Position numbers and translations under genes: made by a program. A stretch of 63,635 nucleotides of DNA, filler included, from Octopus bimaculoides (Eukaryota): assembly GCF_001194135.2 (NCBI RefSeq). It is 9 parts of 7 records of this genome, joined end to end, with 100 filler letters (N's around TTAATTAATTAA, not from the genome) between each part and the next. Parts side by side here need not be neighbours in the genome. Positions count along the whole stretch, not along the records: positions 27,570 to 32,532 come from NC_068986.1; 8 more parts are not named here. One strand, given 5' to 3'. Positions 27,680 to 28,538 of this stretch are shown piece by piece (positions within the stretch are counted from its first letter, which is position 1; each line of letters opens with the position of its first letter). Below the pieces are notes generated by a model that was not told the origin of the DNA, ran no database searches, and saw nothing but the letters and a program-made list of their open reading frames with translations.

Positions 27680-28005
27680 TCAAATTTGTCCTTTCTTTAT
27701 ATTGGGAATTACCACGTGATATGTGGGATATTTTCCCGCTTTTTCTATCAGACTAAAAATAAAATTCCCATTACAAACTTCAATTCCTTCAAGTACTGTA
27801 AGACATGAGCATAGAAAACCCGTGCTTTATTTGGATCTGCATGCTGTATATGCTTCCGGCCCGCCTGTCTCTCATCAGACACACCACATTCATCGTTCTT
27901 AATTATCGGACGTCGTTAAAACAATTACCAAAGCACTGTGATCGATAGTATAGACTAATTTCCTTGAAAGCGAAGTCATGCATGGCAAAGTGCAATGCCT
28001 GGAAT
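27680..28005 (-). pseudogene. Decayed tandem copy (exons A2 28005-27857 and B2 27795-27680) of the A1/B1 module
   Basis: A2 is 149 nt (1-nt deletion), has an in-frame TAA, and has GA at the donor position. B2 reads LEGIEVCNGNFIFSLIEKAGKYPTYHVVIPNIKKGQI* after a 61-nt intron-like gap. Confidence 0.6.
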
Positions 28006-28194
28006 CTGTAAATCCGAATATATACACACACATGCACATACCTACGTACTTACATACATACATACACGCGCGCACACACACACACACACACACACACACA
28101 CACACACACACACACACACACACACACACACACACACACACACACACACACACACACACACACACACATATATATATATATGTATGTACTGTTC

Positions 28195-28325
28195 CTATTG
28201 TATCCACGAGCAGATTATCCTTTCAGTAGTCTTCAACGTACAACGCACGATGGAATGTAATTTTCCCACCCTTTCTATCAGAGTAAACATAAAAGCCCAG
28301 TCGTAAATCTCAATTTCTTCTAGTA
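28195..28325 (-). CDS. Putative exon B1 of the same unidentified gene (after a 63-nt intron)
   Basis: Acceptor TTTCTTTTTGTTCATTTTATAG, in phase with A1. Reads (V)LEEIEIYDWAFMFTLIERVGKLHSIVRCTLKTTERIICSWIQ*. Confidence 0.55.
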
Positions 28326-28388
28326 CTATAAAATGAACAAAAAGAAACGCACAGGAATTCAATTGAAAATACTTACGCTATTAGTTAC

Positions 28389-28538
28389 CGTGCAGCCTGT
28401 CTCGCATCACATACAGTTCATTGATCTTTGGTCCTTTTCGGAGGTTGGTAAAATAATTACCAAAATACAGTGATCGATATAGCAGACGCATTTCCTTGAA
28501 GGCGATGTCATTCATGGTCACAGTGCAATGACAGATGT
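28389..28538 (-). CDS. Putative exon A1 of an unidentified gene (150 nt, phase 1-1)
   Basis: Acceptor TTGCTTTTTAGTATTACAG and donor G|GTAACT. Open frame (D)ICHCTVTMNDIAFKEMRLLYRSLYFGNYFTNLRKGPKINELYVMRDRLH; a paralogous copy lies 533 bp away. Confidence 0.6.

Follow-up and report, generated by a model that had tools for sequence, protein, structure and literature searches.

A Tandemly Duplicated, Exon-Like Cassette with One Degenerate Copy in Microsatellite-Rich DNA of Octopus bimaculoides

RESULTS

Analysis of a 63,635-nucleotide window of Octopus bimaculoides DNA (the whole joined stretch, filler included) was confined to positions 27570 to 32532, one piece of under 5 kb from NC_068986.1. 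It revealed a unit on the minus strand that is present in two adjacent copies. The copies share two conserved blocks around a diverged spacer. Copy 1 has splice sites at the block edges and a reading frame that runs across both blocks, and copy 2 carries lesions in both. In our judgment, there is about an even chance that the locus is a two-exon cassette that was duplicated in tandem and belongs to a gene either dead or unannotated; copy 2 would then be a pseudo-exon pair. On balance, the evidence that the cassette encodes protein is weak.

Two copies of a 530-bp unit share two conserved blocks

The first-pass annotation of this DNA had reported a unit of about 530 bp occurring twice on the minus strand, and this was confirmed by a repeat search and by alignment with MAFFT. 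The repeat search returned three collinear two-copy direct-repeat families with spacings of 530 to 533 bp (D7, 160 nt, 71%; D12, 72 nt, 76%; D13, 26 nt, 77%). When 28200-28560 and 27670-28030 were aligned on the minus strand, two conserved blocks appeared with a diverged spacer between them, so that each copy consists of a block of about 150 nt, a spacer of 61 to 63 nt, and a block of 66 to 84 nt. The copies are 74% identical in block A (28389-28538 in copy 1) and 74% identical in the core of block B (28260-28325), compared with 48% in the spacer (28326-28388) and 50 to 52% in the flanks. The blocks differ significantly in identity from the spacer and flanks taken together (Fisher p = 2e-4 to 4e-6), and they evolve about three times more slowly. 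Measured against shuffled sequences, the alignment scores correspond to z-scores of 26 (block A) and 12 (block B), as against 1.1 for the spacer, -0.9 for the 5' flank, and 2.5 for the 3' tail. The locus thus contains adjacent homologous exon-like blocks on one strand, as expected of tandemly duplicated exons.

The length of the spacer has been kept (63 and 61 nt) despite a sequence that could not be aligned between the copies in either orientation. Inversion of the spacer was considered as the cause of its divergence and was unsupported by the reverse-orientation alignment. Neither a third or further diverged copy nor upstream exons were found in the remaining 4 kb of the piece. A third 530-bp unit would place its block A at about 28920-29070, inside a gap of 199 N; the site predicted for its block B (about 28790-28855) has no similarity to the unit.

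Copy 1 has the anatomy of an exon pair

The AG/GT sites, the matching phase 1, and the 92-codon open frame that had been described for copy 1 are all present. Block A, or candidate exon A (28389-28538, minus strand), is 150 nt long, is preceded by TTACAG (28544-28539), and is open in a frame that runs from phase 1 to phase 1. It is followed by a candidate intron of 63 nt (28326-28388, minus strand), which starts with GTAACT, ends with TTATAG, and contains an in-frame TAA TAG. This candidate intron is 48% T, with 83% pyrimidine at positions -20 to -3. Block B, or candidate exon B (28242-28325, minus strand), is 84 nt long, again phase 1 to phase 1, and includes the conserved core at 28260-28325. 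Both copies retain a GT 84 nt from the start of exon B, in the contexts CGTT|GTACGT in copy 1 (28241-28236) and CGTG|GTAATT in copy 2 (27712). Exon B therefore probably spans 28325-28242, with both exons in phase 1-1, and copy 1 extends from 28538 to 28242. Unless it is spliced at 28242, the frame continues to a TAG at 28197-28195. The aspartate that had been given as the first residue of the peptide is not fixed, because its codon uses the G of the acceptor AG.

The conserved blocks are bordered in both copies by TTAYAG acceptors and, after block B, by a GT. The GT after block A is found in copy 1, which is also the only copy with an open frame and canonical splice sites in compatible phase. 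The copy 1 intron also holds a consensus donor, GTAAGT (28376-28371, minus strand), 12 nt downstream of the weaker GTAACT. Use of GTAAGT would carry the in-frame TAA TAG into the message, and the choice of donor would decide whether the frame survives if the locus is transcribed.

Dinucleotide-preserving shuffles of the copy 1 region (n = 30000) were scored for the complete arrangement at the block edges: an AG ahead of block A and another ahead of block B, a GT following block A, and a single frame that stays open across both blocks. The full anatomy was found in 18 of the 30000 shuffles with a tolerance of ±3 nt and in 65 of 30000 with ±5 nt. The number fell to 2 to 3 in 30000 once the second AG also had to be preceded by a tract with at least 70% pyrimidine. 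The chance of the anatomy is 0.06 to 0.2% per strand and copy. Allowing for two strands and two copies, it is about 0.2 to 0.9%, or about 0.04% with the pyrimidine tract. This rarity, together with the intron-like spacer of copy 1, is a real argument that the blocks are or were exons.

Copy 2 is disabled

The frameshift, the stop, and the GA donor that had been noted in copy 2 are all present, and a second 1-nt deletion was added to them. Pseudo-exon A' (27857-28005, minus strand; 149 nt) lacks 1 nt after 27986 and is interrupted by a TAA in frame at 27905-27903. At the position of the copy 1 GT donor, copy 2 has GA (27856-27855). The copy 2 spacer (27796-27856, minus strand; 61 nt) ends in TTACAG, is unrelated in sequence to the copy 1 intron, and, at 26% T, is not intron-like in composition. 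Pseudo-exon B' (27713-27795, minus strand; 83 nt) has a 1-nt deletion near 27731 and is followed by GTAATT at 27712. Copy 2 is disabled by the two 1-nt deletions, the TAA stop, and the loss of the donor. Because of the stop, the frameshifts, and the missing donor, copy 2 as it stands is no alternative exon. The lengths of the two copies (149 plus 83 nt in copy 2 versus 150 plus 84 nt in copy 1) also lack the equality modulo 3 that is expected of mutually exclusive exons.

Substitutions between the copies do not respect the reading frame

None of the tests applied yielded a positive sign of coding. The copies mismatch about evenly at codon positions 1, 2, and 3 (20, 19, and 15; chi-square p = 0.68), and three-base periodicity of mismatches is absent in every other frame on either strand. 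The excess of third-position or synonymous change that purifying selection leaves was not seen. In a neutral simulation, the observed transition and transversion counts were placed randomly on copy 1. The observed amino acid identity of 34/69 matched the simulated neutral mean of 35.0, and the BLOSUM62 sum of 159 matched the mean of 157. Copy 2 has one stop, compared with a simulated mean of 1.95, which was counted as no fewer than expected. By this simulation, the "conservative swaps" previously pointed out in exon A are no commoner than under random nucleotide substitution. Base composition in copy 1 does not vary with codon position (chi-square p = 0.13); among control non-coding windows, 35% scored as high.

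The method of Nei and Gojobori gave dS = 0.32 and dN = 0.31. A dN/dS near 1 had been named beforehand as speaking against coding; the ratio was 0.96, but its bootstrap 95% interval extends from 0.47 to 2.24. This interval is too wide to exclude one constrained and one dead copy, which are still compatible with it. A pairwise ratio near 1 does not by itself kill coding, because drift of copy 2 leads to an expectation of about (1 + omega)/2. For a copy 2 that has been drifting from the duplication onward, this amounts to 0.55 to 0.6, which lies within the interval. The power of a selection test between the copies is low, since one of the two, copy 2, is only a pseudo-copy.

The copies differ far less at synonymous sites (dS = 0.32) than in the spacer (K about 0.9). 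This gap is awkward for a purely coding account, as coding constraint alone predicts similar values. It may be explained by exon-limited gene conversion after an older duplication, by non-coding constraint, or by a modular repeat with a variable spacer; with two copies only, these three explanations are indistinguishable. Exon-limited gene conversion is a known pattern in tandem gene duplicates.

Under non-coding constraint, the blocks would be conserved sequence that was duplicated but does not encode protein, whether as regulatory DNA or as exons of a transcript that is non-coding or untranslated, with selection acting on nucleotides and not on protein. The threefold slower evolution of the blocks relative to the spacer and flanks and the equal conservation of the three codon positions agree with this, and the splice-like edges would suit non-coding exons. 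However, the 92-codon open frame would then be needless, and constraint on two copies is inseparable from gene conversion. No signal of RNA structure was found on either strand: minimum free energy z-scores for block A ranged from -0.29 to +0.87 across both copies and both strands, and RNAalifold consensus structures were weak on both strands, unlike those expected of a structured RNA. The blocks matched no Rfam family; at E <= 1, Rfam returned only mir-297/mir-3149-type matches on ACAT/TG microsatellites. We regard conserved non-coding sequence as an improbable explanation.

The deduced peptide has no recognizable fold or family

Pfam searches gave no match for the spliced peptide of copy 1, for the copy 2 peptide, or for any other frame of both copies. 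A word-indexed search of 5.8 billion protein clusters found no protein with words in common with the peptide, and a look-up of the exact product of the 92-aa open reading frame found no recorded gene. Sequence searches of the PDB returned nothing with the peptide or with a two-row profile. No relative was revealed when peptide and DNA patterns were run against contigs of metagenomes and prokaryotes; the 14 bacterial matches to a DNA pattern with 19 specified bases are about the number expected by chance. In the protein libraries searched, the peptide thus has neither a homologue nor a known domain. One BLASTP alignment had likened "YRSL...YVMRD" to the winged-helix/MHD region of STAND ATPases; it was not significant, and the idea was dropped.

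The sole phmmer match among 1.84 billion representatives was the leucine-rich repeat (LRR) region of a plant TIR-NBS-LRR protein (E = 1e-4), with an alignment that passes smoothly over the proposed splice junction. In addition, a low-confidence single-sequence AF2 model (pLDDT 48) predicted a strand-helix alternation that repeats about every 25 residues. The cassette might accordingly encode about three LRR units of about 25 aa each from an LRR-type protein. However, the 38.7 bits of the phmmer match were accumulated over ten alignments, scoring between -0.9 and 7.0 bits apiece, to one 47-residue LRR double unit, and because ten near-identical repeats were summed, the match is not independent evidence. 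BLASTP of the peptide against the plant protein gave E = 0.15, and no Pfam LRR model matched. A chain of LxxLxLxx(N/C)xL motifs spaced every 20 to 30 residues was equalled by 9 to 19% of shuffled peptides, and copy 2 has none. A Foldseek search of the PDB with the AF2 model found nothing at E <= 0.001 and gave insignificant matches to one ribosomal-protein chain only. An LRR identity is very improbable. The peptide is without a recognizable fold or family.

The copies are embedded in microsatellites

The piece is AT-rich, with a GC content of 0.17 to 0.43 across 300-nt windows, and its microsatellite load is very high. Microsatellite windows were found at 28073-28168, 28849-28899, 29099-29250, 29611-29673, 29752-29903, 30929-30987, 31234-31307, and 31986-32130. 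The arrays are (CA)48, (TC)25, (TA)22, (ACAT)26, (AC)31, (ACT)33 running directly into (TAT)18, (TC)~29, (TAA)~25, and a TG-rich tract. Copy 1 is flanked by a degenerate CA/TG/TA-rich low-complexity tract that includes (TC)25 (28600-28899) and runs up to a scaffold gap of 199 N (28900-29098). The gap is bounded by (TC)25 on one side and (TA)22 on the other, and the assembly break fell within simple repeats. The junction between the copies (28013-28194) is a compound microsatellite plus about 45 nt of unique copy 1 tail; its microsatellite consists of (CA)48 at 28073-28168 with ACAT/TA runs on either side. The layout is a microsatellite, copy 1, the (CA)48-containing microsatellite, copy 2, and, at the edge, (AT)n.

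The left edge of the piece holds (AT)8 (27570-27585), the counterpart of (TA)n at 28169-28181. The two belong to a further repeat family, D9, in which 27570-27597, (AT)8 followed by GTAAAG, is 71% identical over 28 nt to 28166-28193, (TA)n followed by GTATGT. The likeness of the left edge to the (TA)n that follows (CA)48 suggests that the tandem array may extend beyond this edge.

Two further observations concern the simple repeats. The (TAT)n array at 29850-29903 and the (TAA)n array at 31234-31307 lie 1.3 kb apart and are reverse complements of each other, which produces long "inverted repeats" (I2-I25). The 1.3 kb between them contained no open reading frame with a Pfam match. The pairing is probably a simple-repeat coincidence, although the arrays could be the ends of an element. 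Rfam matches to mir-297/mir-3149 were obtained at 27992-28063, 28134-28215, 28740-28828, 29103-29253, 31992-32064, and 32438-32526, with 18 to 41 bits against gathering scores of 90 to 100. All of them lie on ACAT/TG/TA microsatellites, and they were rejected as miRNA genes and classified as low-complexity artefacts.

The position of the simple repeats bears on the main rival reading of the locus, as a pair of non-coding SINE-type, retroposon-like repeats of low or multiple copy number, read on the plus strand and ending in (CA)n-type tails. The second copy would have inserted into the tail of the first or been duplicated along with it. The conserved blocks would be shared modules of a "jigsaw" element and the spacer a variable module, and the minus-strand open reading frame and splice-like dinucleotides would be coincidental. 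On the plus strand, the body of each copy is indeed followed by CA-rich simple repeats (CA/ACAT/TA arrays), as expected of the 3' end of a SINE. Mollusc SINEs are commonly (CA)n-ended, and mollusc jigsaw SINEs combine conserved central domains with variable parts and have (CA)n-type terminal repeats (PMC4758252). The even spread of block substitutions over codon positions and the equality of dN and dS are what non-coding sequence predicts, and the locus has no homologues and no coding composition signal. However, no Pol III promoter head derived from a tRNA, 5S, or 7SL sequence was found with ARAGORN or Rfam: ARAGORN detected no tRNA-like head, and Rfam at E <= 1 gave microsatellite artefacts only. 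The remaining 4 kb hold no third copy. A spacer that is equal in length yet unrelated in sequence is unusual for two copies of one element. Furthermore, chance would have to yield the full exon anatomy, which appeared in about 0.06 to 0.2% of shuffles per strand and copy and in fewer with the pyrimidine tract. A SINE-type pair is a possible explanation that we hold to be distinctly less than evenly probable.

DISCUSSION

The preferred reading of the locus, a duplicated two-exon cassette, draws on the conservation of the blocks, the splice sites that match the block edges, the rarity of the anatomy in shuffles, and the intron-like spacer of copy 1. The retained spacer length, the phase 1-1 exons, and the microsatellites flanking each copy were likewise counted in its favor. 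Counted against it were the lack of any protein-level signal between the copies, a dS far below the K of the spacer, and the lack of a composition bias, homologue, domain, or recorded product, together with the AF2 pLDDT of 48. Viewed as coding exons, the blocks have the anatomy and lack the marks of selection and homology; viewed as a SINE, they have the tail and lack the promoter head. The first-pass annotation had proposed a lineage-specific gene or repeated domain that was duplicated and is decaying in one copy. The tandem duplication, the degenerate copy 2, and an anatomy that chance is unlikely to produce bear this proposal out in part, but its protein-coding part is unsupported.

In the original unit, a 63-nt intron may have separated exon A, of 150 nt, from exon B, of 84 nt, which was followed by a short tail; the unit would have been situated between TG/TA-type microsatellites. 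Unequal exchange or replication slippage between these microsatellites would have produced two head-to-tail copies and left the microsatellite at their junction. Copy 1 would have kept all that a phase 1-1 coding cassette of about 78 codons needs in order to be spliced without loss of frame, and copy 2 would have lost its donor and gained a stop and two frameshifts, becoming a pseudo-exon pair. Microsatellite-mediated unequal crossing-over and replication slippage generate local tandem duplications. The TG/CA/TA arrays that bracket each copy and the long (CA)48 at the junction resemble the products of this process, which is deduced here from the layout alone, and the arrays could equally have expanded afterwards.

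The present state of copy 1 is a separate matter. That it is in use today, in an unannotated or lineage-specific gene, is possible but doubtful. That copy 1 is itself a relic that has not yet been broken is rather unlikely. A more far-reaching version takes copy 1 as the live exon pair of an orphan gene, whose phase 1-1 module of about 78 residues has no detectable relative and is multiplying by microsatellite-mediated duplication, with copy 2 as a failed module; we consider this version unlikely.

The closest described phenomenon is tandem exon duplication with decayed or alternative duplicates. A phase 1-1 arrangement is tolerant of exon duplication. Tandem exon duplication is reportedly the subject of papers by Kondrashov and Koonin in 2001 and by Letunic et al. 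in 2002. Published reviews cover the phenomenon and its by-products, including mutually exclusive pairs and unannotated or decayed intronic duplicates (PMC9013439, PMC9741552). The O. bimaculoides locus resembles such duplicates in its neighboring homologous blocks on one strand, in their near-equal lengths and retained acceptors, in its duplication-tolerant phase, and in having one intact and one degenerate copy. It differs from them in that the duplicated unit is a two-exon cassette including its intron instead of a single exon and in that the copies show no protein-level conservation between them. Compared with mollusc jigsaw SINEs, the locus likewise has conserved modules beside unrelated ones, a simple-repeat tail on each copy on the plus strand, copies arranged head to tail, and a non-coding substitution pattern. 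Unlike those elements, it has no detected Pol III or tRNA-like head and no further copies in the remaining 4 kb, and its complete antisense exon-intron-exon anatomy would have to be accidental.

Local duplications in which one copy has decayed are commonplace, and the locus is one of them. It illustrates that good splice sites around an open frame, when seen in one copy of a repeat, argue for coding only where the differences between the copies follow that frame; here they are frame-blind. Without expression of copy 1, the locus would be no more than an old duplication or repeat of an ordinary sort, lying in non-coding DNA rich in microsatellites. If copy 1 is expressed, a gene with a small module that has no known relatives is missing from the annotation, and the locus would add modestly to the known lineage-specific genes and serve as a clean example of the microsatellite-driven duplication of an exon cassette.
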